55,395 nt of DNA from Octopus bimaculoides (lineage: Eukaryota). Numbering within the stretch: position 1 is the stretch's first letter; the number at the start of each line of letters is the position of its first letter. Positions 14,869-46,300 of the stretch are shown piece by piece. The DNA is taken from NCBI RefSeq assembly GCF_001194135.2, contig NC_068990.1, forward strand, positions 94,291,581-94,346,975, in the 5' to 3' direction. Below the pieces are notes generated by a model. That model did no database searches and was not told where the DNA came from. It saw nothing but the letters and a program-made list of their open reading frames with translations. The position numbers and the translations under genes are program-made.

Positions 14869-14900
<32 letters not shown>

Positions 14901-14950
14901 CATGTCCAGTTGACAGAGTCTAAAACCAGAGGTTCTTGAGTAGGATTCAA

Positions 14951-15109
14951 TCATAACATATAATCAAGTTCATAGCGAATGTATTGGTTTTTCACATCAT
15001 TTGGTATGCGAGGATAGGCTGGAATCATGCCGTCTTGGGCCCCGATATATACAGTGTTGTACACTTTCCAGTAAACATCTCGCACTTTCCGTGCAGGGTG
15101 GAAAAGCCC
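14951..15109 (-). CDS. SF3B1: SF3B1 exon 21 (terminal coding part)
   Basis: ttttctag|[52 protein letters not shown]. Confidence 0.96.
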
Positions 15110-18100
15110 CTAGAAAAGACAAAAACAGAAAAACTTTTAAAATCCTTTAGTTTAAAAGAGAAACAGTCTATCACCCAACACAATTTCATAGAAAATAATT
15201 CTCATCAGATACTTTAGTAATACTATTATTATTATTATTATTAATAAGACAGCGAGCTGCAAGAATCGTTAGCACACTGAGCAAAATGCTTAGCAACATT
15301 TCGTCTGTCTTTGCATTCTGAATTCAAATCCTGCTAGGATTGACTTTGCCTTTCATCCTTTCAGGGTCAATAAATTAAATACCAGTTATGCACTGAGGTT
15401 GATGTAAACAACTGGTCCCCTCCCCAAAAATGTCAGGCCTTATGCCTATAGTAGAAAGCAGTATGCTTGAATGATTATTGTAAATGAATGTTATTCATTT
15501 CCAATATTCTGCAAAAACATGTCTGGCCATAGGAAATATTATCTTGCTTGGAAATAGGTGGAAGTTGGCGAGAGGAAGGACATTTGGTTGTAGAAAATCA
15601 GCCTCAATAAACCCTGTTCCAACCCATGCAAGCATGGAAAAGTAGACGAAATGATGAAGTTAATAAAATAACCATTCCTGTTTAATTATCCATATATCTT
15701 CAATTCACATGCAATATTTTTTATTAACAAATTAGATTGATTTCAAATTTTCTGATTTAATTACCTTACGAATATGTTTTCCACCTGAACACTTATACTT
15801 ACCAGTTACATAAAAATATTATTTTTGTGGGTTTAATTCGAAAAGGAAGGGCATAACATACAACCTCTGTAAGGACACAATGGTGAAGGAAAATGTACTG
15901 TTTCTGACATTGTATTTCTTTATCTTTTAACATGGAAGGAAGCAATGTCCATAACCTTTCCAGGCCCTCACAGACTGGTGGGTGGAAGATATCCTTAAAG
16001 CAGAATCCTGCCCTGACTGTGTGCAATAGAATGCACTCTGTTAAATGTGGTCAATATGCCAGATTAGAGCCTGGTGAAAGTAGAATTCACAATGCCAAGA
16101 ACCAGATTAAATACCACAAGGTATCTGATACTCAAGATAAATCATTCAGGGTGGATGAATATCTTCAGTTTTTTCATTAACCCCTGATAGAAGGCAATGT
16201 TGGCCTCAAAGCACACCAACTTAATCTACTACAATAAGGAGCAGCAGACTAAGGACGCTACTGCCTTGAATCCTGGAACTGATTGGGCCAGTTCCTTGTT
16301 TACAGATGAGCAAACTGTCCAACCCATGCCAGCATGGAAAGCAGATGTTAAACGACTGGAACAACCTGAAACAAAATATTTTGCTCAAGAACACAAGGCA
16401 CCACCTGAGCTGGGAATCAAAACCATATTCTTGTGACATGAAGTGCAACAGCCTAACCACTAGGCTTTCTTTCATAGATGGAGATTTAAATCAACAGGTA
16501 CAAAGTAAGTAAACTATCATCAATCAAATATCCATATATTACCTGTAGAGCATACTGGAGAATTCTTGCCGATCCCAAACCAACTCGAAGTCCTTCAATG
16601 GCTCCCATAAATGCTTGTACAACATGTGGTGATGTTTCAAAAATATTTGGCCAGACATAGTTCATTAAATGATTTAGAGCATCTTCACAGCCAAAACCAT
16701 ACACTCCAAGGGACAAATGCTGAATAGCAGCCATTGCTGTTTGACGATGAACAAGGTCTCTGCAAAAGATAAACAAAAAATCTAAGCAAAAAATCCATTT
16801 TCGGTGCTTAACAGGACATCGAAATATTGTGTTTTCTTCTGCTCAATAATTCAAGTCTGCACAAAAGAATCTTTCTCTCCTGCTTTTTGTTTTAATAAAG
16901 TGGCTCCCCTTGTGGTTAGTAGTCTTGCATGGTGACCTCACTAGTATTAGTTGCACAAAAAGGAAGAATCCAGCAGTAGAAACCATGCCAAAGCAGTCTC
17001 TGGATCCTGTCAAACCCATGTCAGCACAGAACATAGATGTTAGATGATGATGGTTGTGTGAGACAGAGAAAGAGTGCGTTTTCTGAATAGTGTTATTTTA
17101 TTTATGTTTTGAAGTTCTTCCAATGCCAAAAGCTTCTGATCTGTGCACAGAAGCAAGCTTGAAAAGATTGTCTCTCAATGAAAGAGTCAGGATCTTCACA
17201 GAAGTTTATTTACACCGGCACCTCCCGACCGTGCGGGCTCGACCTCTCTCGCTGTGTGTGTGTGTGTGTGTGCCATGTCCAGTTGACAGAGTCTAAAACC
17301 AGAGGTTCTTGAGTAGGATTCAATCATAACATATAATCAAGTTCATAGCGAATGTATTGGTTTTTCACATCATTTGGTATGCGAGGATAGGCTGGAATCA
17401 TGCCGTCTTGGGCCCCGATATATACAGTGTTAACACAACTAACAACTTATTTTGGTGTTTCCCACTATATTTCAACCACAAAACCTCTTCTAATTACAGC
17501 ACAGAAATCATCTGAATGGGCTATAAATTTCCTTTCATGAATGTCACTGTCCCTAACAAAACTTCCAAGCCAGGAACACTTTCAGTTTGAGAGACAACCA
17601 AATGCACCCCAAACTGTCTGTACAGGAATGTGCCATTTATTACTATTTTGTACTTAGGCTCCTTTCTACTTCTTTTTCTGAACTCTAAACCACTTTTTCA
17701 AACTGGAAACTGTACTTGCAATGACAGATTCAGCCATGAGAACCATGTTGTCATCATATAAAAGTTTCCAGGGACTAAAATTGAAATTGCAGTGCAGAGT
17801 TGTATTCGTGATTGTCTTACTAGATATATGGCATTTGCAACATTGTTCTTTGGTTCAAACCCAAACTATATCCTATCCAACTTGGGATTAGCTCCAGTAC
17901 AACTTGCTACCAATTATCGAACATGACTCAATAACTTGAGTTGTCTGGATTTTCTGTCGCAAGTGATAATTCTATATTGGTCATTAGGGATAATGCCATC
18001 TTATACAATCTGATTAACTAATCAAATTACATAATCTTGTGCTTCCAACAGTTTGCTCCAATAAATCAGTAATTTTCCTTTTTATAAACTCTGCCCTGCA

Positions 18101-30100: not shown

Positions 30101-33100
30101 CAACTGGAACTTGATGTCTTCTTGGCTGGTGTGCTGTCATCTGTTGCTTGATCCCATCGCCGTCTCTTCACCGGTTGTTTCTGGGCCACAGCAGCCGCTG
30201 CCGCTGCCGCTGCTGCAGCTACGGATGCTGATGTACTTGAAGAATCTCCTGATGAACCATTGACTGCATGCAACTCTCCTGATTTGGCCTTCTCTACCAG
30301 TTGTTGCCGTAAAGCAGCCTGGAAATAAAGAAATAAACATTTCTTATTATAATGGAGCTGATATATATATATATATATATATGCTTGTTTCTTTCTGTGT
30401 TCCTTTCTGTGGAAGAGTGTAGGCTCAAAACGTTAAAGACTTGAAAAAAATGAAGCTAGTATGCTCTGCTGGATGTGTAATGTCAGTGTGCATACACGAC
30501 AGAGTGTAAGCACCTTGAGAGAAATATTGGACAAAAGAAGCATCAGATGTGGTGTGCAAGAGAGACAATTGCACTAGTATGGTCATGTGCTGCATATGGA
30601 TGAGGAGAGTTGTGTAAAGAAGTGTCACTCCCTAACAGTGGAAGGAACCCATGGAAGAGAAAGACCCAGGAAGACATGGGATGAGGTGGTGAAGCATGAC
30701 CTTCAAACGTTTGGCCTCACAGACACTATGACAAGAGACTGAGATCTTTGGAGATATGCTGTGGTTGAGAAGACCTGGCAAGTAAAGTGAGATCACAGCT
30801 GTAGCTTATACTAGTGTCGTATAACCAGCCCATTTAAAAGTACCCTTGAATCATCTGGTGATATGCTGCGCTTGAGAAGACCTATTGAGTAAAATCAAAA
30901 TGGGAATTGTGGTTGAGGCCGATGCCAGTGCTGCCTGACTGGCACCAGTGCTGGTGGCACAAAATAAGCACCATTCAAGCGCGGGTCAATGCCAATGCTA
31001 CCTGACTGGCTCCCCATGATGGTGGCACGTAAAAAGTACCATCCAAACGTGGTCAATGAATGTGGTCGTGGATTTCATGTAACAAATTAACTAATAATCA
31101 TTAAAGACTCCATCTAAGACCCTGCATCTAGCAATTTGAAGGTCATTGATACTGCTCCAAAGTTAAGTAATTGTTGGGGGTGTCATTGTTTTAATGTCAA
31201 CTTTTCCATGCTTGCATAGATCAGAAGTGACTTTGGTGAGGCAGAATTTTTCAACAGCCAGATGCTCATCCTTTCACTAACCCTCACCTGCTTTCAAGCA
31301 AGGTAATATTTTCCTTGACTCATCCAGCACCAAACAACCTAGACATACTTTCCTGGAGGATTGTTAACAAATAATAATGATTGTAAACAAAGAGTTACTG
31401 TTCTCAAATAGTGTACATATGTTGAGATAAGGGAATACACACACACATAGATGGACTGCTTCCAGTTACCATCTACCAAATTTCACTCACAAGCTACAAG
31501 TCAACCCATGGCAATGAACATCAACCAACAGTGTCCTTGCAGTGAAAGCAAACTTCAGACCACATAGTTCCTAAGTGAACTTCTTAACCACAAAACTAAA
31601 TATTTTGTAAAAGCTGATGAGAGAAAGAAAAACCAAAGAACATTGTTCTCTTAATGACATGCATCAATATATCATGTGCAGGTTTAAGATTCTGCTCTTT
31701 ATTGAATATTTATTATCAAAGAAGTGAATAAAGGAGACAAAATAAGTGTGAGATTTGAAAGCCACAACCTACCTGTTGGTGTGTAAGTCGTTGTTCAACC
31801 ATCACATCAGAGAAAGTTCGTTTGTTCAGTTTTGGATCGGGAGTTTTGCCGCCTGGAAAAGAAAGCAAACAAGGTCACGACAAGATGCCGTGACAAATAA
31901 ATTCATGTGTAAGGAAATATGAAAACACCTGCATTGCAGTTATCATCTGAAGAACACCTCCAGAAACCATTCCAAGCATTAAATCAAGTCTTGCCCTTCC
32001 AACAATATACAGTATTTATATTGGAAAAGTTTAGAGAAACATAGCGATGAGGAAAAAAGACAAAAGACAGAAAGCTTAGAACAACTAAAAAATTCCTTCA
32101 CTGAAGCTTTGAAAATAATTTTACTGAATTCTTTATCACAAATACTGAGATGCTATCCTGAAATACAGGAAATTGTAAAATGACCAAATGAGCTAAAAAA
32201 AAAAAAATTAAAAAAAAAACTACCTTAGACAAAAGAAATAAGGATCTGCAAATAACTTACATGGTATAGATATCAAGTTGGAACAAAATAGATCCTACGA
32301 AAGAATTTCCAATGTTGCCCCTGTAAAACTCTGGCCTAAGTAAACAAACTTGAGCAGGGATTTTGGTTCCATCAAGTATTATAAAGAAACATATTTAAAA
32401 GATAAGAAAGTTCTTCTGGTTAGACAGGTGAAGTAGTCAGTCTTGGAGGAAGAGAAGTATGCATTTGTGAGAAATAATTAGATAACCAGTCACTGTCGGT
32501 CCCATTGGAATGGAATCATTCAGTTGACTTCCCAGCAAATAGTGTGTTTGGTTGATTGCCTGAGAGTTAAGTGTCATCTTGGCAACAGTGAGAGAATAAA
32601 TAGCTTGAAGGAACTCTAGCCTTGGTATTCAAACAAAACAAGCAAAGACTGACAGAAAAAATACAAATCATTGCTTATGGAGCAATTTTTAAGTAACAAC
32701 TTAATATATAAAATAAATTTTTTAAATGTTTAAAACTGACTGCCACATAAGTGAAATATGACAACAGAAATTCAATACCATTAAATAGATTCACCTCTCG
32801 TATTGGAAAGAGTCGATCTTGTTAAACTGAAGTTAATTTTCAAACTTTATCAGTTTCAGAAAATTAATAGCCATAGATTGACACCTCACTCTGTAGTATT
32901 AATTATACTAATTTGAAATGTAAAGAAGATAGATTATTTAGATTGAGATAATAACAGTTACTGTTTAGCCAAAAGTCATTTCTGATTGAGTAGACTTATG
33001 ATGAAAGGCATTCCAACAATGACCATCCAGTCTTTTTCCTATGGGTAGGAGATACAGAACCCCATTATTCAATGTATCCTTTTCTAAGATGGTAGGGTGC

Positions 33101-36100
33101 GATTCGAAATTTGGGTACTATTTCTAGCAGGCTGAGAACTATACTGGGGGCAGGAGACCATTGAACATTTTATAAAAACATGGCAACTTGAACAAGTATC
33201 TTTTCCTTTAGCCTTACACTGACCAATACCTCATGGTAGCATGAGGGGAAAAAATGTGTAGAAACAATGATATGTGTGTGTGTGTGATGTACACACACTT
33301 TTTCATGGTTTCATTATTTTTTATGTCAGTTTTTTTTTTACCCCATGCTGACACAAGTTAGGAGAGCTTATTGAGGCAGTATCCCCCCCCCCCCACATAC
33401 ACACACAGAGACAGACAGACAGATAGAGACCAATTGCCCTCCAAAATACCAATAACACTGCCATCAAACAGAAGTTAATAGATTCCAAATAGGGTGAAAA
33501 TAGAAATAAAATAAATATGACCAGGCTAAAGGATAATATAGGATTTGAACACCTGACCTTTGAGTTAGTTCTTAATACCTTAAATACTGTTTAATGTGAT
33601 AAACAGACAGAGCTTGAAGTCTTCAAAGTGATCAGTATTTATAATGTTTGTCAACTAATTCTATAAAGGCTGAATATGTTTAGTACTGTGGACTTGCAAA
33701 ACGAAACTAAAAAAAACCCCAGCAGCTAAGTAACGTTTTTGGTCACCAAATAGAAAGCCATAATAGCAAAATGGAAACTTATTCACATTGTGTAAGAAAG
33801 AGTAAACTTTTTCAATAAGTAAACAAATCATCGGAAAGGAAAGACTGATTAGCAATGATGTGATGGTTTTGGAAGAAGTGGAATTAAAGCAAGCATTTCC
33901 ACAGGTGGGAGATCAAATTTCATTAAATGCTACAAAAGTAGTTTAAAATGGGAAAGTAAAAAGAAATGCTTGCTTATTTCCCAGCATGAAAAAAAAAAAA
34001 TACTGTCTTCCTTTTACTATCATACGTACAGTGCAGCTTCATGAGTTAGTGCCATCTTCTGTTCGTGTCTGCTTTCATAAACACCAACCCTAAAATTAGT
34101 CTCAGATTAGTGTAGTTCTAGAAACAGAACAAGGAGAGGGTAACAAAAAAAAAAGAAGAAAAGGTTCCCGATAATTCTTCTTTTCCACCAATTCACAGCA
34201 TGGAACAGCCTTGGCAAAAAATTATCAAATATATCATTTTCGTTTCTTATTTACTTCCTCTCACCCCAAAACATAGAAATGTTCAGTAAGTTTTAAACTA
34301 TATACATCTAGCATACGTGTACATCTCTCTTAAATAAAATGAGAATATCTTATAGAATTCTGCTTTTCCTACTACATGATGCTACAGAGAAACGAGATTG
34401 CATTTCTGTTGCAAAACTAGTTTGGGGAAATCATATTTAAAATATAATTTTAGGAACTGCTAATTGCTATCAGAATAGGAAGTTTGAACAATCATCTCTC
34501 TCTTTCTACAACTTGGTTTGCAGGATAAATTTCTAATCTAAAGAAAACCAAAGAACACTGATTCTATCAAACTGATGCCAATTTCAAATTTTATGAAGTT
34601 TTACTTTGTTATTAATGCTTTGCCCCAGGTGAGAGAAACAAAATTTCATATAGGAAATCATTTAGCTGCTAATTTCATACACAGGCTGCAGGCATGATTA
34701 TGTGGTTAAAAAGTTTGTATGCCAACCACCTGGTCTGAAGTTCAATCCTAATGGGTAACACCTTAGACAAGTGTCTTCTACCATAACCTCGGGATTTGGC
34801 AGACAGAAACTGGAAGAAGCTCATCAAGTATGTGTATATATGCATGCACACAAATACAGTTTGCATGCATGCATATGTATAACTGTGTGTGTATGTTTAT
34901 ATACTTTTCTGAAAATTCTCTTGAGCCAGAGGGAGCGACTTTGCTGCCATTTCCTCTGTCAACAGGTCATCCACTGGTTTTGTGCTTTTGTAAATAGTAT
35001 AAGATATCCCCCACCACCAAAAAAAAGAAAGAGGTAAGGGGAAGCAACGAGAAGGGTATCCAGTTGCATAACAATGCTTTCTTAATACATCTGTCTAACC
35101 CAGCAGGAAAAATGAACACAAAAACAAATGAATATATATATATGTATATAGTATGTGTGTGTGTGTATATATATATGCATACACATACACACATCCTATA
35201 TACAGGGTGCAGATGATATTCACTTGCAGCTTTCAGCTGCTAAATTTGCACCTATTCTTTTTACTTTTGTTGTCAGCCTGTTTTTCTTAAAAACAACTAT
35301 TTTTGCTTAATTTCTTTTTTGCAGAATAACTGACTTGTTGCTCGCTGTCCCACCCAGAGTCCTGCAGATGGAATTTCCAGCAACAATTATGGTCTTCAAT
35401 GTCATCAGCAATGGTGACAACATGCTACCCGACTTCTTGCCAAGAAACTCAGGCCAAACACCAATGACTACATTCATGTTCTGAGCAAAGTGGTAAAGCC
35501 CTAGGTCAAGTGGGGTGGCTGCAGGGAGGTCATGTGTGTGACAGCAAGACTCTGCAACCTTACTACCGCAGCTGGAAGGTCCAGGCCTGGCTGTCGAAGA
35601 ACTTCTTTGATTACACAGCATCTCATATTTGGCCTTACTGCAACCCTCTTGACTTCTTTGTGTGGGTCATGGTGGAATGAGACGCCAACACATCCAGCTG
35701 CAACAAGAAGAACAAGCTGAGGGCCTTCAGGGATCTAAAACAGGAGAGAGTGATAAAGATCTGTGGCTGGTTCCAAGGCTGCCTGGAAACTGTCAACGAG
35801 GCCAAAGGTGGTTTTGTCAAGTGAGACTGACAGAACATGTCATGAAGACAAACTGAACCAAATTTGACTGATATTTCTCAAATATTATAAATCCTTTTTT
35901 TTTTCTTCCTGAGACAGTCAACATGCAAATGAATACTATCTACAACCTGTATACCCATATTGATATATAATGTCTTGAACATTTGTAGGTTAATACCAAG
36001 GAAAAGGCTTATTTTATGGACAAACTTCTATGATTATATATATATATATATGTATATATACATAATGTATATGTATAATGAAAATTGATGTACTGCTACA

Positions 36101-39100
36101 AAAGGAAGAACTATATTTTATGGGATTAAAAACAAAAATTTCTCTTTTTTTACCTTCTTTCAATGAAAGTAGTTCATTTAAGATGATATGTTCAAAGAAA
36201 GGGCTGACAAAATTATAGAAAGTAAATCACTAAACTTTCATTTAAGCCAAAAAAAAAAAAAAAGGTTCAATTAAAAAATTGAAAACTGATAAATCTAATT
36301 GATAGAGATCAATGGTAACAGCAACAGTGAGGCATCAGCAGAAGTGTTTGGGACTTAATTACACTGGTAATTCAAGTAGTTGGTAAGCACTCAGCCTTTC
36401 TATAGCAACATGTAGTAGACACTAAATAAGATGTGAATTACACTACAATTATGTATCCTACATATATTGGTGAATTGTTGTGTTTCTTATTTTATCATGG
36501 ATCAGGTTAATTTATTTTTTTTAAAAAAATCACCTAGTTTTTTCATTAAAAAAATTAAATTAAATGAAATTTGAGAAAGCCAATCTTAATCTTAAAGGTT
36601 TGACAACAACAACAACAATGCAGAAGGAAGGGCACCGAGGTGAAAGCACCTCACATGATAGATGTCGATCAGGCACCAACGGCAGCAAGGCATTCCAGTA
36701 GCTAGAAAGGAAAGATACATTTAATTAGTACCCAGATTTTTTAAGTTGTACATCAGTTTAGTGGCACTAGTGCCACAACACTGAACGAGTAGCAGTACTG
36801 TCTACTTCATGCAGTCTTTTTAACAGCATGTAAAACAGGTGATACACATTTGCAGTTGTCTCTTGAAACATATTCTTAACTTCACTTCAAGGAGCTTTAA
36901 CGATGATGATGATGCAGGTCTGATAGTGTTCTACTAAAGTAAATTGAGATGGAATTTTTTCTTTTTTCCATTTTAGCTATAAAAGATTAGGCTTTTTTTT
37001 TCTTCTTCTTCTCCTTCACCAATGTTTTTAAGAACAGAACATCAACCAATAAAACAAATATTTTTGAGATATTCTGGAAGAAAAGCTTTTGATCCTTTAA
37101 AAATGATTTTGAACCTTTTCATAAATATTCTCAGAAATCTATAAAATTTCAAAGAGCCATACAGAACCAAACAATTATCAATAAGATACCTTAAAACGTC
37201 CATCTAACAGTTAGGGACCAAATTTCCAAACAAGTCATCAGACCTATCTATATTTAATATCCCCTATTATCCCCTTTCTTCATACCTTCGCCCCACCACC
37301 ATGTCATTCAATATTGTTATCTGTCACTCTTTTTCTCAGCATCACCAGTCTTATATCTCTTTTACAATACTTGCTCCTCTATCACTCCTAAAACTCCTTC
37401 CTCATCCACTGTCTAAATTTATTATTCCCCCTCTTCTGCTTTCCCAATACTCCCCCCACACCATCATACACCCTCTTGCTCTAGTTCTCCCTGTATCATC
37501 ACTCACTCTTCTATTCACTCTCTCAATCACATTCAGAGATATCTTAAAATAAAAGCTCTCTACTCTTGTACAGGGTTACCAGATTCGGCTAAGTAACATA
37601 ATGCTACTTTTCTGGACCACATGCTTCTATTATTTTTTATTTGGGTTACTAACTCTAGTAGAATTATATTTTAATATGAAAGGTAAAAATCCAATTGAAT
37701 ATTAAATTATCAAGTAAATTAGAACTGACCTGCAGACAATCTTTGTATATGCGTGTATGTGTGAGTGCGTATGTTTGTGTGTATACCATTCAAACACATT
37801 CTAATTTACTAAAAAAATGTTCATTTTGGAATACTTTCTAACATAATCTGCAACTTTCTGGAAAAATTTGTGCTACATTTTATGTAATTAATCTGGCAAC
37901 CCTGATTTTGCAGCAGACTTGATAATTGTAACCAGTAAACTATGAACAGTGGTTGGAAAATGAATGGACACAACACTTGGTTGAGAGCAAGCCTTGATCT
38001 TTTTGAGGCCATGTTAACCTCTTTTGCACTGATGATATGATAAAATGTACCAAGACATTCTGTAAAGTGGTTGGTACCCAAGAGAAGCCATGCCAAAATT
38101 GGAACATATGAATTAGACATGTCTTGGATGTTAGTAATTCTAAATAAGAACTGACTTGGACCAAGATAACAAACCCAATCTTTGAGGAGGTGGAGGAGGA
38201 CAAATTTAACAAGTAAAGTAAAATATTCTTTTACTACAGTGGATAGTGACAAGAATGAATTTTCATGATTGACATCAATCCCAAAATTGAAACATTACTC
38301 ATGGAAACACCAAAGGATGTAATAATAAGACTAAACAGAGATGGATCACACTTCTCTACAACTTCAAAAACCTGCTCAACACTGACAAGAAATCTGATAA
38401 ACATTTGAAAACAAGTTGTATGCACAAGTGTACAATTGAACGTGATAATACTAAAACAAAGAACACAAATGTATGAATTCTTGTAAGTAAAGACAATTCG
38501 CTTTTTGCTTACAAATAAAATTATCTAGAGATAGGGAAGTCAACAGGTATAACCCTAGTATTTTATTAACAAATAGGATAAACCAATGTAAAAACAAAAA
38601 TAAAATAAAAGCTAAGCAAAATGGATTTGAACAGAGAAATATAAACTATTAAACCAGATACACTAAATGGTCCAGTATTTTACCATTTCAACCAACGCAT
38701 CTACTCTAATATTAATCATCATAGTAATCATGGTATTAAGTAGACCACTGGTCACAAAACACTTGCAATCTTCTAGCTTTCAAAGGCTGCCACCCACACT
38801 CACTAATCAGGTAGGTGACATATTCCCCTGAAACAAAATACGAGTGTGTTGTGGATGAGTGGAGTGAAGCGTTTCACTCAAGAACACAATGTACGGCTGG
38901 TCTGGGAATTGAAACTACAACCTCGCAACCGTGAGTGAAATACCCTAACCACCAAGCCACGTGGCTTTACAATATTAATCATAATATAAAATAAAAAGGT
39001 ACAAAGTCTCGTCTTACAATGCCACAACTTATTTAATATTAATACATAAAGAGGAAAGAGAAGAATTACAGCAAACCTAATAAAATATCTACAAGTGTTG

Positions 39101-39341
39101 CTTACATCTTCAATCATTAACGGCCTTTCCTACAACTATAACTAACTTTGATATTATAAGAGATGAAGAAGATTCAAAGAACTAATTAACAAGCCACAGA
39201 GATAAAACATATCAATTTATATGAGGCAAAAAGTTGAGAGAGAGACTTCAAAGCACTGGCTTATTTGAAGATATAACCAGGCACTCTCATGATGGTCACT
39301 GCCAACCTTTTCCTTGTAAAAATTTAAATATGCACTCTAAA

Positions 39342-39373
<32 letters not shown>

Positions 39374-41793
39374 NNNNNNNNNNNNNNNNNNNNNNNNNNN
39401 NNNNNNNNNNNNNNNNNNNNNNNNNNNNNNNNNNNNNNNNNNNNNNNNNNNNNNNNNNNNNNNNNNNNNNNNNNNNNNNNNNNNNNNNNNNNNNNNNNNN
39501 NNNNNNNNNNNNNNNNNNNNNNNNNNNNNNNNNNNNNNNNNNNNNNNNNNNNNTATATATAATCAGTTCAACGAACAAACAATTCAAGAAACAAACAAAA
39601 ACCAAAGTGAGGGGAAAAAAAAAAAACAAATGTGAGGGCATACACAAGAATTATATTAGTTTGATGCTCAGTGAAAAGAGAGAGTTTTTAACATTTCAAG
39701 CATGGCTCTTTGTCAGAAAGGAGGAAAGGAAAAGTTCAAAGAAGAAAGAAAATCGATAACAGCCCACATGTGGTTACATATCTCAAGTGACCGGAAGTGA
39801 AAGGAGTTAGAGAAAGTGGATTTTTGGGACACAAGTGTGTGAAGATGGTCAGTGTGTGTGTGTGTTTGTGTGAGTATGTGTGTGGTAGGATCAGTGCGCA
39901 TGTGTTAGTGTTTATGTTTATGTTGCTGTGAGAGGTCAGTAGCAAGTCATCGGTGTGTGTGTTTGCATGTGTGCATAAACAGAGTGGGAAAATGAAGATA
40001 TATAAAACTTGACATAAAAACAAGTATTTATATATATATATATATATAAATATACATATATAATACACATATATATGTATGTATGTATGTATATATATAT
40101 ATGTAAGTATACATATATATATATATTGGGTCATCCCATAAATAATGCGGGTTTTTTTTTGTACTTCTTTTATTTTTCCAAATTAAGATAAAGTTCTTTC
40201 TTAATCTAAAATACACTCTCCTTCATTTTCTACAATGCTCTTCCATTTATCTGGTAGACTTGCAAGCCTTCTCTTCCAAACTTCACTTGCCCGTGATGAA
40301 AGATATCCCTCCAGTACCATTCTGATTTCATATCTTTTTCTGTCCAAATGATTCTGAAGACTACAGAACAAAGGATAATCAAATGGGGCAATGTCCAGCA
40401 AATATGGTGGGTGGGGCATCGTTTTCCATTCAAACTGCTCCAGCTTTTGGAATGTCATCCTCACAGAATGTGGCTAAGCATTATCCTGATGGAAGATGGC
40501 CATTTTTCTTCCAGTGCTGACTTAAGCTGCTCACAGTAGATCTCCTTTGTTATCGTTTGGTTTGGATTTAAAAGTTCAAAGTAGACTAAAGCTTTCATAT
40601 CCAACCAAACAGATAAAAACACCTTATGTGGATGAAGGCATTCTTTAGTCAGGGGTGCCAGTGTTTCTCCTTCCCTACCCAATGTTTTTGGTGCTTGGCA
40701 CTTGTCACCAGCCACTATTTGGTCAAAAAAAGATTCATTCGTGAGGTGTAACAGCAAGGAAGAGCACACATTCACTCTCATTCGCTATGCTGGACCATTG
40801 AAAGATTTTTTTCATTCTCTTATTCCTTTCTGTTGAAGAACGTANNNNNNNNNNNNNNNNNNNNNNNNNNNNNNNNNNNNNNNNNNNNNNNNNNNNNNNN
40901 NNNNNNNNNNNNNNNNNNNNNNNNNNNNNNNNNNNNNNNNNNNNNNNNNNNNNNNNNNNNNNNNNNNNNNNNNNNNNNNNNNNNNNNNNNNNNNNNNNNN
41001 NNNNNNNNNNNNNNNNNNNNNNNNNNNNNNNNNNNNNNNNNNNNNNNNNNNNNNNNNNNNNNNNNNNNNNNNNNNNNNNNNNNNNNNNNNNNNNNNNNNN
41101 NNNNNNNNNNNNNNNNNNNNNNNNNNNNNNNNNNNNNNNNNNNNNNNNNNNNNNNNNNNNNNNNNNNNNNNNNNNNNNNNNNNNNNNNNNNNNNNNNNNN
41201 NNNNNNNNNNNNNNNNNNNNNNNNNNNNNNNNNNNNNNNNNNNNNNNNNNNNNNNNNNNNNNNNNNNNNNNNNNNNNNNNNNNNNNNNNNNNNNNNNNNN
41301 NNNNNNNNNNNNNNNNNNNNNNNNNNNNNNNNNNNNNNNNNNNNNNNNNNNNNNNNNNNNNNNNNNNNNNNNNNNNNNNNNNNNNNNNNNNNNNNNNNNN
41401 NNNNNNNNNNNNNNNNNNNNNNNNNNNNNNNNNNNNNNNNNNNNNNNNNNNNNNNNNNNNNNNNNNNNNNNNNNNNNNNNNNNNNNNNNNNNNNNNNNNN
41501 NNNNNNNNNNNNNNNNNNNNNNNNNNNNNNNNNNNNNNNNNNNNNNNNNNNNNNNNNNNNNNNNNNNNNNNNNNNNNNNNNNNNNNNNNNNNNNNNNNNN
41601 NNNNNNNNNNNNNNNNNNNNNNNNNNNNNNNNNNNNNNNNNNNNNNNNNNNNNNNNNNNNNNNNNNNNNNNNNNNNNNNNNNNNNNNNNNNNNNNNNNNN
41701 NNNNNNNNNNNNNNNATATATAAATACATATACATACATATAAATACATATACATACATATATATACACATAAACATATATTTATACATATAC

Positions 41794-41824
<31 letters not shown>

Positions 41825-41889
41825 TATATATATACATATACACATACATATATACATATATACACATACATATATACATATACATATAT

Positions 41890-41932
<43 letters not shown>

Positions 41933-43079
41933 TTTACATACATATACATATATATATACATACATACATATATATATATACACACATATATATATATACA
42001 TATACATATATATATATATATATAGTTTATTAATAATAAGTTGTTGAGTATTATCTGGAGATGTATAATGCCAAAAAGTAAGGATGTTGTAGAGGCACAG
42101 AGATGTCAGCTCTACATTCTCCACAAACAAGAATTATCAGAGGTGAAAACTATGGGAAAAATTAAATGCTCACTATTTACAGCATAGACAACAATAAAAG
42201 GATTTAACGAGACCGGAAGCTTCACGTCAAGAACAAAATGTGGAAGAAAGTAAATTACAACACCTTGAGAAGACCGATTACTAATTCAAACACCTCTCTG
42301 CAACTGCAGAAAAACTTCATCAGAGCTTGCTGAAAATTTCAATGAAGCCTGCACATTAAAAATATCACCAACAACAGCAAGAAGAAGATTTCAAGAACAC
42401 AGTCTCAAAGACTGTTAAGCAAAGAAGAAACTCAGGATTTCTCAAAAGTGAGCAAAACATTTTTGGCTCCAGTGAGCTGCCAAAAATCATCAAAACCGGA
42501 CTCTTACACAGTGACCAAATGTCATCTAGTCAGCTGAAAGCAATTATCAGCTTTATAAACTGAGCTATACTCTTGTTTTTTTTTTATATATATGTAAAAT
42601 AATTTTATTTCTAATCCTAACTTGCAATGAATGATGTTTTAAAGGCCAAGTTTAAACCAAGACAATACACCTTGCCATACTTGTCGCCAAACAAAAAAAA
42701 AAAATGGTTCCAAGAAGAAAGCTTTACTCCACTGGAGTTGCTATCCCTGACCTAAGTCCTATTCAACATCTTTGGAAGGTGCTTAGGAGGGCAATTAGAA
42801 GTAGCACAACTAAAAAATGAAAGCACAATTATGTGAAACTAGAAGAGTATCACAACCTCATATTATCCATGCCAAGATGAATTAAGGCAGTCATTTAAGC
42901 TAAATCTGATACACTAAGTATCAGATTACTGAAAAATAAATCATTTTTGCATTTTTATACTTTTATTGTCCTGATTTAACCATATACCTTAAACGTAATT
43001 AATTTTGATGGGTGCTTTTTACTTCTGGCCAAGGCAGTATATATATCATCATCATATATACACACATATACATATATGC

Positions 43080-43116
<37 letters not shown>

Positions 43117-43295
43117 TACACACATATATATATACATATGCACTTCAGCAGTGTAACTACATGTGTCATTGGCAAATGAAGAGCTATACTTGAAACATCA
43201 AACTCTCTCTTTTCACCGAGTGTTGTTCGTTTTTATTCATTTATTTGAATTGTTTATTTGAATTGATATACATATATATATATATATATATACAC

Positions 43296-43344
<49 letters not shown>

Positions 43345-46300
43345 CATCATTTAATATCTGCATTTCATGCTAGGATGGACTGGACAGTTTGATAGAAGCT
43401 GCCCAGGTGAAAGGCTGTTCAGGCTCCAACTGTTTGTTTTGGCATAGTTTCTACAGCTGGATGCCCTTCCTAACACCAACTACTTTACAGGGTGTGGACT
43501 GGGTGCTTTTATGCACCACTGGTACAGGTGCTTTTTACATGGCACCAGCATTTACAAGCCCACAAGATTAAGGATACTCAGCTGGAGAGAGTTGCAAGGA
43601 ATGAGACTGTATATATACCTACACACACACACACATATATATATGTATATATACACACACATACGATGGACTCTCCCATTGAAGACAACGTATGAGCATT
43701 CAGCTTTTGCCGAACAACCAGCACAAATGACTTGTTTTATAGTGATGATCAAATGTTTGTGCCACACATTAGCTCACTCCCCCCTCCATCAAATCAAGGT
43801 GGCATGAACACATGCACAAGTGTACCACATGTCAGGTGGCAAAGTGATCACAGTGCATTGTGAGAGTGTTTCTGCTCAAGAACACAACGCACCCCACTCT
43901 AGGAACTGAAATCACAATCTAGCAATCATGAGTGCAACACCCTAACCACAAAGCCATACACCCATACAGCCCATTGAAGAGTACCCTTCAATCACTGGGC
44001 AATAAACTGTGCTTGAGAAAACCTGTTGAGTCAAGTGAAATCATTGTCATGGCCAGTACTGCCTGACTGGCACGTAAAAAGTACCATTCAAGCATGGTCC
44101 TTGCCAGTGCCACTTGACTGGCTCCAGTGCCAGAGGCACATACAAAGCACCAGTCAAGCGTGGCTGATGCCATTCCTGCCTGACTGGCCCTTGTGGCCGG
44201 TGGCACATAAAAAGCACCCACTACACTTTCGGAGGGGTTGGCGTTAGGAAGGGCATCCAGCTGTAGAAACACTGCCAGATCAGACTGGAGTCTGGTGCAG
44301 CCTTCTGGCTCGCCAGTCCTCAGTCAAACCGTCCAACCCATGCCAGCATGGACAACAGACGTTAAATCACGATGATTTAGATATATATATATATCCACAC
44401 ACAGATGACAGGGCTTTTGTCCATATATCATATTTTTGAAAACTTAGAAATAGTCGCAGCATAGTTTGTCAACATTATTAAAATGAAAAGGAAATTAACA
44501 AACTTTGATACAATATCATATTTTCTAGAGAGAAGCTGACCTATATGACTGCTGATTGATAAAGCAAACATATTTTGCTACTTTTATGTTTTTATGAAAG
44601 CTCAACCAAATTAACACAAAGAAAATAATTACTTATAGAAGATGAAAGGAATGGACGACATTTGCTATTCTTCACATATCGATGCAAAAATATCAAATTT
44701 CTGTAATAAGTCTTAGATTTTCTAAAAAGGGAAATACAGAATTCCGACATTCGTAACCAAACTAATCATAAAGGAAAGCTCAAAATTATATTGATACATG
44801 AGGCAATAATGTACAAGGAAAATATTAAAAAAAGACCAATGAAACATCTTCCAAGAAAAAAAGAAGACAAATATATAAATAAAACAAAGGAAAACTTTTG
44901 TAAATATTTTTTGAATTATTTTGATTTCAGTTGGACTCATAAACTGTTCAACCAGCTAAAACTTAACATGTTGATAACCACGTGGGGCTAAATTAAATGA
45001 GGATTTCATGTGTGTGTGTGTGTGCGTGTGTGTGTGTATGCATATAAATTTGCTAACAAAATAAACAGCCTCTTATTTGACTTTTTTTGCTTGCTTGGAG
45101 TTTTTTTTCTTTTGTTTTTTTGGTGAAACTAAAATAGATGTATCATCTTATGATACAGAAAATTCTTAAAATTGCTAGAACAATTTTAACTGGAATTTCA
45201 AGCCAACAACAATTTTCTATTTATGGTTCAACTGATTCAATATTGGACTACTTCATGATCCTTGGAACCTAAAATGGAAAATATACAGATATATATTTAT
45301 AAACTCGCATATGTATGTATTAATCTTACACATACACAGAATGTCTCTTAAATCTCTTGATAAATATTTAATAAAATACAAATCAGGATTGATGTTTTCC
45401 TAGAAATTTGCAATCAGCAAAGGAAAAGTAATCTTCAAGAAAAGGGCCCCGCCTTTATAATTACATTTCTGGAAAAAAAACCTGCTTTATTGTCTTATCT
45501 AAAAGACCGACATACAAATTGAGTGACTGAACGAGACTTTAGGCAAATTTCTTAATTAATTAATAAGATGTTTAAATGCTTTTAAACACAAAAATAAGAG
45601 AAAAGTTTGTGCTTAAAAGTAACTAATGTATAAGTTTGTAAAACCCCTTCAAAACCAGATAAAGAATATAGTAATAAAAAAAATTTGGGCAACAAATGAA
45701 AAAAACTGTAAAAAAATTTTTTTTAATTTATAATTTTTCAAAAGAAATGACAAACCTTCAGCAAAAGGATCATATCTTTCAGGAGAAATAATCATCTGCC
45801 TACGAATAGCTCGATAGTCATCTTCCCTGTCAGCAATTCGGGCTGGTCGGTTATCAGCAAGAGGGTCATAATTCTGAAATAGCAACAAGAAAAAATTTAC
45901 AAAAAGGAAGAAAAAAAAAAAAAAAAAAAAGCCAGCCTTTATTATACACTGTTTTTTCATCCTCATTGTTTTAAGATGCACTTTTCGCCAAACCAAGTGA
46001 AATCGTAGTTCAAGCCAGTGCAAATAACACTAGAAAGATACCCACTACACTGTTGGAGTGGTTGGCATTAGGAAGGGCATCCAGCCGTAGAAACCAAGCT
46101 AAGCCAGACTGGAGTCTGGTGCAGTTCTTCAGCTTACCAGTTCCAGTCAAACCGTCTGACCCATGCCAGCACAGAAAATGGAGAGAATTTGTTGAGGTAG
46201 ATTTTTCTACAACTAGATGCCCCACCTGTCACCAGTTTCTAAGCAAGGTAATTAACATGAGTTCAATCCTGGCTAGCTTTCACACAAATCAGCCAAATGT

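Follow-up and report, generated by a model that had tools for sequence, protein, structure and literature searches.

The window analyzed here is a 55,395-nucleotide (nt) stretch of the Octopus bimaculoides genome (NCBI RefSeq assembly GCF_001194135.2, contig NC_068990.1, positions 94,291,581 to 94,346,975 of the forward strand). It carries the gene for SF3B1 on its minus strand, from approximately 53.5 kb to 14.95 kb of the window, and the features described below are on this strand unless noted otherwise. Within the spliceosome, SF3B1 is the core protein for branch-site recognition, and no splicing factor is mutated more often in human cancers. The gene was placed by tblastn, with a human SF3B1 sequence serving as a guide only, and its model was then built by hand. 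The spliced protein matches Octopus isoform X1 (P0269) at 100% identity over residues 9-1357. Exon 4 (45756..45873) ends with ...ERYDPFAE/G in phase 1 (slashes mark splice junctions), and exon 5 (31773..31852) is 80 nt long. Between them lies the 13.9-kb intron 4 (31853..45755), which includes two N gaps and several ultraconserved islands. Within this intron is a short stop-bearing exon, called exon A (34030..34117), which is the subject of this report.

Exon A was compared with its counterparts in Octopus sinensis and Octopus vulgaris, in Argonauta hians (L007), in the gastropod Pomacea canaliculata, and in L011, an RNA-seq contig (run ERR4009535) from a distant cephalopod whose coding sequence is ~82% identical to that of Octopus. 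Cod (L015) served for comparison with vertebrates. Contigs L001, L002-4, and L005 end short of the homologous position and are uninformative about exon A. A search with the exon 6 peptide for cephalopod genomic contigs returned only non-cephalopod open reading frames (ORFs).

Structure, splicing, and conservation of exon A

The sequence quoted in the original prediction occurs letter for letter at 34117..34030 of intron 4. Two acceptors and a shared donor give the exon two forms. The outer form (34030..34117, 88 nt) is preceded by a pyrimidine tract and AG (34118..34165) that are found only in cephalopods. It shifts the reading frame, such that translation from exon 4 yields E-L-H followed by a TAA stop at 34109..34107. 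The inner form (34030..34089, 60 nt) preserves the frame and is the anciently conserved unit. It carries an in-frame TAA at 34048..34046, and translation from exon 4 into the acceptor at 34089 yields 14 residues and a stop. Both stop-containing translations had been predicted correctly, as had the presence of two CTAAT branch motifs ahead of the inner acceptor. These branch-site-like motifs are CACTAAT (34112..34106) and GACTAAT (34101..34095), and together with a short U4 run and the AG they make up an inner acceptor module (34090..34112) that has no pyrimidine tract and is present in one copy in the window. The donor, GTACGTATG (34021..34029), is weak, carrying a T at position -1 and a C at position +4.

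Use of the donor is shown by annotated SF3B1 isoform X2 (P0270), whose N-terminus is MKLHC/GKTPDPK. The X2 models (XP_029640647.1, XP_036362063.1, CAI9729468/9) come from O. sinensis and O. vulgaris and fall in the 90% cluster of the closest database protein. When the donor at 34030 is joined to exon 5 and the product is translated from the ATG at 34040..34042, X2 is reproduced exactly, with 1229/1229 amino acids matched. No other site in the window is able to encode the X2 junction. The same junction is present in L011, in which a pyrimidine tract with TTTTAG at its end leads into an 89-nt homologue of exon A (61 nt when counted from the inner AG), followed by exon 5 exactly and a fully spliced downstream mRNA. 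The original prediction had called for tandem donors and for a junction from 34030 to 31852. The first of the two donors and this junction are borne out by X2 and L011, whereas the second donor, at 34026, would lead to a 20-amino-acid ORF that differs from X2 and is unsupported.

Conservation of exon A far exceeds that of the surrounding intron, as the original prediction required. Over the alignable parts of intron 4, O. sinensis and O. vulgaris share ~90% identity with the window. The exon is identical at 88/88 positions across the three Octopus species and resides within a 151-nt perfect run (34141..33991); approximately 2e-4 runs of this length are expected at a 90% intron background. In Argonauta, only four colinear blocks of intron 4 can be aligned (45658..45129, 36864..36583, 34139..33798, and 32032..31853), and the other SF3B1 introns align almost only at dispersed repeats. 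Exon A matches Argonauta at 82/88 positions (93-94%) compared with 84.6% for coding exons, and identity reaches 100% both in the 28 nt that separate the acceptors and in the 20 nt that follow the donor. Similarity is lost upstream of about position -20, where the pyrimidine tract is nonetheless kept: in both Argonauta and L011 the composition of the tract (34118..34165) is preserved and its sequence is not. Likewise, exon A is 92% identical to L011, compared with 81.8% for coding sequence (L011/L012). Nucleotide conservation of the exon therefore equals or exceeds that of its neighboring coding exons, in the absence of protein-level constraint.

The element is also present in a gastropod. An nhmmer profile made from five cephalopod sequences found one match in the P. 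canaliculata SF3B1 locus, located on the sense strand of intron 4 approximately 490 nt upstream of exon 5 (E = 7e-9). The snail element, gtgCACTAATATGAGACTTATTTTAG/GACTGG...(60 nt)...AGAACC/GTACGTATG, shares the branch-motif and AG module, the donor, and the 60-nt length of the inner form found in Octopus and Argonauta. Because Pomacea has this inner unit and lacks the outer acceptor, the 60-nt unit is the ancient one and the outer acceptor a cephalopod addition. The inner acceptor module is 100% identical among Octopus, Argonauta, and L011, and matches at 21/24 positions in Pomacea. Stops are kept in every lineage (TAA and TAA in Octopus and Argonauta, TAA and TAG in L011, and an in-frame TGA in Pomacea), and the 3' third of the exon is divergent between lineages. 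These comparisons show that the splice-site modules of exon A are under strong purifying selection in more than one molluscan class.

Other origins for the sequence were considered. The core of exon A is single copy in the window, and a repeat or transposon origin was dropped for this reason. Identity with a known noncoding RNA (ncRNA) or small nucleolar RNA was also dropped, because Rfam gives no match at the exon A block. Elsewhere in intron 4, sub-threshold Rfam matches to microRNA families (mir-297, mir-466, and others) at 35138-35205, 40038-40137, 41713-42026, and 43056-43144 are spurious hits to TA/TG dinucleotide repeats on both strands. A metagenome scan with the invariant 24-mer of the element gave 0 matches.

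Probable unproductive splicing and its alternatives

Exon A is real, conserved, and stop-inducing, and its donor is spliced to exon 5. We consider it quite probable that this is an unproductive-splicing exon, acting by poison inclusion, by decoy-mediated intron retention, or by both, and that it limits SF3B1 output. We infer that the acceptors function, and hence that exon A might be used as a cassette joined to exon 4, because the AG, the branch motifs, and the pyrimidine tract are conserved.

According to this model, the core of the element is the 60-nt inner form (34089..34030), whose acceptor offers CACUAAU and GACUAAU as near-consensus U2 branch sites along with only a U4 run, and whose donor GUACGUAUG is conserved yet weak. 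In cephalopods a further acceptor, with an extended pyrimidine tract, was added upstream, producing the 88-nt form. Placement of exon A between exons 4 and 5 would stop reading after 3 or 14 extra codons. Premature termination codons (PTCs) are present in both registers with at least 15 exon junctions downstream, and hence more than 50 nt ahead of the last junction, and mRNAs that include exon A would be expected to be degraded by nonsense-mediated decay (NMD). Alternatively, only one flank of the exon might be spliced and the RNA kept with intron 4, as occurs with human decoy exons. Either route would result in less full-length SF3B1. If inclusion responds to the activity of U2 small nuclear ribonucleoprotein (snRNP) and SF3B1 through the branch-site-dominated acceptor, the exon would create negative feedback. 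Autoregulation via branch-site choice is an attractive possibility because the acceptor is conserved, pyrimidine-poor, and equipped with two branch motifs.

Transcripts from other species offer some indication that intron 4 is retained. L005 retains the 920 nt of intron 4 immediately upstream of exon 5, L011 retains the portion of intron 4 upstream of exon A, and the Pomacea transcript P0047 begins with the last 54 nt of intron 4 read through, as checked against the genome. None of the three contains any of the downstream introns. This is the pattern that a selectively retained intron would give, although the evidence is anecdotal, coming from assembled contigs that are non-quantitative.

Several findings weigh against this interpretation. 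The X2 models are annotations from O. sinensis and O. vulgaris rather than from O. bimaculoides itself. The originally predicted junction between exon 4 and exon A was not found in protein searches: a query combining exons 2-4 with the inner peptide recovered no transcript or predicted protein that joins the two. Ten exact predicted ORFs, representing both acceptors in four species, the joining of exon 4 to a second candidate exon (exon B, described below), and intron read-through, were absent from a collection of 15 billion proteins, a test of low power. Moreover, L011 has intron sequence rather than exon 4 upstream of its exon A homologue. Finally, when splice sites are scored by position weight matrix (PWM), the donor and inner acceptor of exon A score much like random sites.

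This last observation bears on the simplest alternative, which is that exon A is a chance pseudo-exon of a 14-kb AT-rich intron. With a PWM trained on the 19 acceptors and 18 donors of this SF3B1 gene, the outer acceptor (34117) ranks 39 among 698 AGs, and its original description as very strong was an overstatement. The inner acceptor (34089) ranks 317/698, and the donors at 34030 and 34026 rank 454 and 241 among 814 GTs, respectively. In intron 4, 128 acceptor/donor pairs on the sense strand, and 66 on the antisense strand, score at least as well as exon A. Splice signals alone fail to single out this exon, and we do not count the PWM ranking as evidence. What sets exon A apart from chance is independent of these signals, namely the annotated X2 junction, the L011 transcript from a second lineage, and conservation that is above that of coding sequence across cephalopods and extends into a gastropod. 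A chance origin is already refuted by these data, and we assign it almost no weight. A recursive-splicing exon was likewise rejected, since the acceptor AG in Pomacea is not followed by GT and cod and snail have an intron of only 1.9-2.5 kb.

Two alternatives grant exon A a function other than unproductive splicing. It might serve as an alternative first exon, transcribed from a promoter in intron 4, that gives rise to a functional truncated SF3B1 (X2) without the first ~128 residues. Indeed, X2, with its coding sequence beginning at the ATG at 34042, is the only annotated product that uses exon A, and the lack of exon 4 in L011 and of any recovered junction from exon 4 to exon A fits the same idea, as does the fact that many lophotrochozoan X2 isoforms begin near exon 5. 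However, the X2 ATG is absent in Argonauta (where the sequence is CTCTGG), L011, and Pomacea, whereas the stops just upstream are kept. Furthermore, the conserved positions (branch motifs, AG, and pyrimidine tract) are those of a 3' splice-site module, and conservation ceases ~20 nt upstream, at the place expected of a core promoter. The 5' end of L011 falls in a poly-T tract, which is typical of an assembly break, and annotation by longest ORF would predict X2 from a poison-exon transcript as well. On these comparative grounds, exon A looks like an internal exon rather than a first exon, and we regard the latter as rather unlikely. Because the stops are kept, the 3' third of the exon is divergent, and the ATG is absent in Argonauta, L011, and Pomacea, X2 is most likely an annotation by-product created when the longest ORF was assigned to a frame-broken transcript.

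The other alternative is that the conserved block acts as a cis-regulatory or structural RNA, such as a silencer or enhancer, a fold, or an ncRNA, with splicing to exon 5 being incidental. Conservation does run ~230 nt past the donor, a stretch in which a 13-bp inverted repeat lies, and the folds predicted in every lineage include a hairpin in which the first branch motif and the inner AG are buried. This hairpin shows neither compensatory changes nor thermodynamic excess (z = +0.57), and a conserved RNA structure at the inner acceptor was therefore not upheld and is kept as an idea only. The block belongs to no Rfam family, conservation peaks exactly at the splice signals (branch motifs, AG, and donor), and the 60-nt distance from acceptor to donor is maintained between snail and octopus despite divergence of the 3' third of the exon. 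In addition, two lineages make use of the junction to exon 5. These characteristics make the RNA-element explanation improbable, somewhat more so than that of a first exon, and we continue to favor unproductive splicing.

Truncated SF3B1 annotations are common in related animals. RefSeq isoforms labeled X2 or X3 that start at or just before exon 5 are found in scallops, abalone, oyster, Pomacea, Dreissena, Mya, Gigantopelta, and two nemerteans, and such starts imply that the upstream frame is broken. Proteins of this type that lack the first ~145 residues are P0045, P0046, P0048, P0050-52, P0074, P0277, P0282, and P0284. A junction between an alternative exon and exon 5 is visible in scallop (MR/GETPD) and in Gigantopelta (MELEDPAR/GKTPDPK), and the junction codon for R in the latter is compatible with an exon ending in C, as in Pomacea and L011.

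Other conserved elements of the SF3B1 locus

Exon B (36655..36701, 47 nt) is a second candidate stop-inducing exon, which would shift the frame and bring about a stop in exon 5. It is the best pseudo-exon of intron 4 by PWM. Its features include a perfect TACTAAT branch motif (36730..36724), a tract reading TCTTTCCTTTCTAG/, and a donor, /GTGAGG, located in a possible hairpin (GAGGTG-CTTT-CACCTC). A 151-nt run without mismatches among Octopus species encloses the exon, which is also conserved, along with its flanks (36583-36864), in Argonauta. The module formed by TACTAAT and TCTTTCCTTTCTAG/ is also present in Pomacea, and its start is visible at the end of L001. No transcript evidence was found for this candidate.

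A conserved flank on the 3' side of exon A (33798..34020) aligns with Argonauta and has no Rfam family match. It carries the perfect 13-bp inverted repeat mentioned above, with arms at 33975..33963 and 33899..33887 (AAGCAAGCATTTC / GAAATGCTTGCTT); in Argonauta both arms are kept apart from a single mismatch, and the loop is longer by a 20-nt insertion. A further conserved block precedes exon 5 (31853..32032). It includes 160 nt that match perfectly among Octopus species, and its identity is 85% to Argonauta and 90% to L005. Within it, approximately 25 nt upstream of the exon 5 acceptor, is a hairpin with a 9-bp stem, GTCACGGC-ATCTT-GTCGTGAC (31874..31894). The hairpin is identical in Octopus, Argonauta, and L005, is kept in Pomacea apart from one G.U<->A-U change, and is absent in cod. 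Given its location, it could modulate use of the 3' splice site of intron 4.

The 5'-proximal part of intron 4 (45129-45658) is 71% identical to Argonauta over 566 nt and contains two stretches, of 86 and 128 nt, that match perfectly among the Octopus species. Other perfect runs of 93-120 nt are shared by the three Octopus species at 35119-35211, 36339-36458, and 37291-37403. These have no Argonauta alignment, and the first overlaps a dinucleotide repeat. At the far end of the gene, a 159-nt piece of the last coding exon that includes the stop codon occurs twice at 100% identity (17273-17431 and 14900-15058). The piece is single copy in O. sinensis, O. vulgaris, and Argonauta, and its doubling is either a very recent duplication or an artefact of the O. 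bimaculoides assembly.

Relation to vertebrate decoy exons and implications

The human precedent cited in the original prediction is accurate. Intron 4 of human SF3B1 is retained and contains six cryptic exons, E4a-f (29-56 nt), of which five contain PTCs, and conservation of E4d and E4e extends as far as fish (PMC6097662). Both intron retention and decoy activity have been shown experimentally in human SF3B1 (Parra et al. 2018, PMC6097662; 2020, PMC7373989). The sense sequence of the human E4e donor, as derived from a morpholino, is GCACGAAAGT/gtacgtattccggat (PMC7373989). In cod, the E4e homologue (L015 4759-4813, 55 nt) reads actaatggtaaagagaaattttctag/GCTTC...GGCACTGAAAGT/GTACGTATTCTGG. 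Joined to exon 4, it encodes GFFSAG-stop, which is the C-terminus of an annotated teleost (mudskipper) isoform X4 (...DPFADGFFSAG-stop). Another cod exon (L015 4174-4209) encodes AVLLCQSCTALC-stop, with which short SF3B1 isoforms end in annotations ranging from lamprey to teleosts.

Exon A and E4e have much in common. Both reside in the orthologous intron, which follows DPFA(D/E)/G in phase 1 and precedes an 80-nt exon 5 in Octopus, Pomacea, and cod. Each is a short (55-60 nt), conserved, stop-bearing exon in the 3' part of an intron that carries several such elements, and each has an ACTAAT motif ~17-21 nt upstream of an AG that is accompanied by a short U run only. The unusual donor, /GTACGTAT, is identical in human, cod, Octopus, Argonauta, and Pomacea. 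In Octopus, Argonauta, Pomacea, and cod alike, the sense strand of intron 4 contains a single GTACGT(AT), which in every case is the donor of a stop-bearing exon. By rough estimate, the probability that the donors match by chance is about 0.002 to 0.01. The shared signature is therefore this rare donor, GTACGTAT, together with ACTAAT, a purine-rich spacer, U4, and AG/G.

In contrast to the identical donor octamer and similar architecture, there is no significant overall similarity between exon A and the human-type decoys. The mollusc nhmmer profile searched against cod loci gave E = 22, at the E4e donor only, and an anchored alignment of the mollusc element with E4e that omitted the donor gave z = -0.2 and p = 0.66, compared with z = 10.3 for a Pomacea-Octopus control. 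Since both results are non-significant, we did not assign exon A as the orthologue of E4e. The two also differ in their exon bodies and encoded peptides, which show no relationship, in the pair of branch motifs at the mollusc acceptor, and in the additional outer acceptor of cephalopods. Moreover, decoy activity is experimental in human, whereas the mollusc exon is known from sequence comparison and transcripts. Thus, of the initial suggestion that the module is ancient or convergent, great age holds within molluscs (cephalopods plus the Pomacea inner unit), whereas tests of similarity to the human decoys were negative. Homology of exon A with E4e is a lead, not a result.

The closest precedent within this complex is found in another SF3b subunit gene. 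A poison exon of SF3B3 has a stem-loop that hides its branch site, as validated by compensatory mutants and by SHAPE (selective 2'-hydroxyl acylation analyzed by primer extension) (PMC11162794). Like exon A, it is stop-inducing, and its conservation spans phyla, from fly to human. Inclusion of the SF3B3 exon is governed by how accessible its branch site is and responds to U2 components, and the hairpin predicted for exon A would similarly bury the first branch motif and the AG. However, the SF3B3 exon is in a different gene and intron, and the exon A hairpin has no covariation or thermodynamic signal.

Exon A also resembles autoregulatory poison exons more broadly, which are ultraconserved, non-coding, stop-introducing exons in genes for the splicing machinery, with weak but conserved splice sites. 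SR proteins such as TRA2B and the decoy of SNRNP70 provide examples. RBM39 is an autoregulatory poison-exon case among splicing regulators (PMC10477243). In the TRA2B, RBM39, and SNRNP70 type of system, self-binding and NMD sensitivity have been demonstrated, whereas knowledge of exon A comes from comparative and transcript data. Exon A is probably an invertebrate instance of this known kind of decoy or poison exon, and we found no description of an SF3B1 decoy or poison exon from any invertebrate in the searchable literature.

The resemblance to E4e raises the tentative possibility, which we judge less probable than its converse, that the two exons derive from one ancestral exon that predates the protostome-deuterostome split and that acts as a sensor of U2 snRNP/SF3b. 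The ancestral element would have been a 55-60-nt stop exon with a branch-site-dominated acceptor, no pyrimidine tract, and the donor GUACGUAU. As a sensor, it would be engaged more often when SF3B1 is more active, which would reduce the amount of productive SF3B1 mRNA.

Control of SF3B1 dosage by intron 4 decoys is known only from vertebrates. Molluscs carry stop-bearing exons in the same SF3B1 intron under constraint that is stronger than that on coding sequence, and the conserved parts are a branch-site-only acceptor and an odd donor that is shared with a human decoy. This indicates a very old regulatory design, whether inherited or repeatedly reinvented, and throttling of SF3B1 in this manner may be very old. 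The core of exon A represents a minimal conserved sequence that could be mutated to learn how decoy and poison exons are sensed. In addition, the isoform X2 proteins of octopus and many other lophotrochozoans are probably by-products of annotating unproductive transcripts. If exon A and E4e do share an origin, they would be part of one of the oldest known autoregulatory splicing circuits, and one that operates on the core branch-site factor itself.

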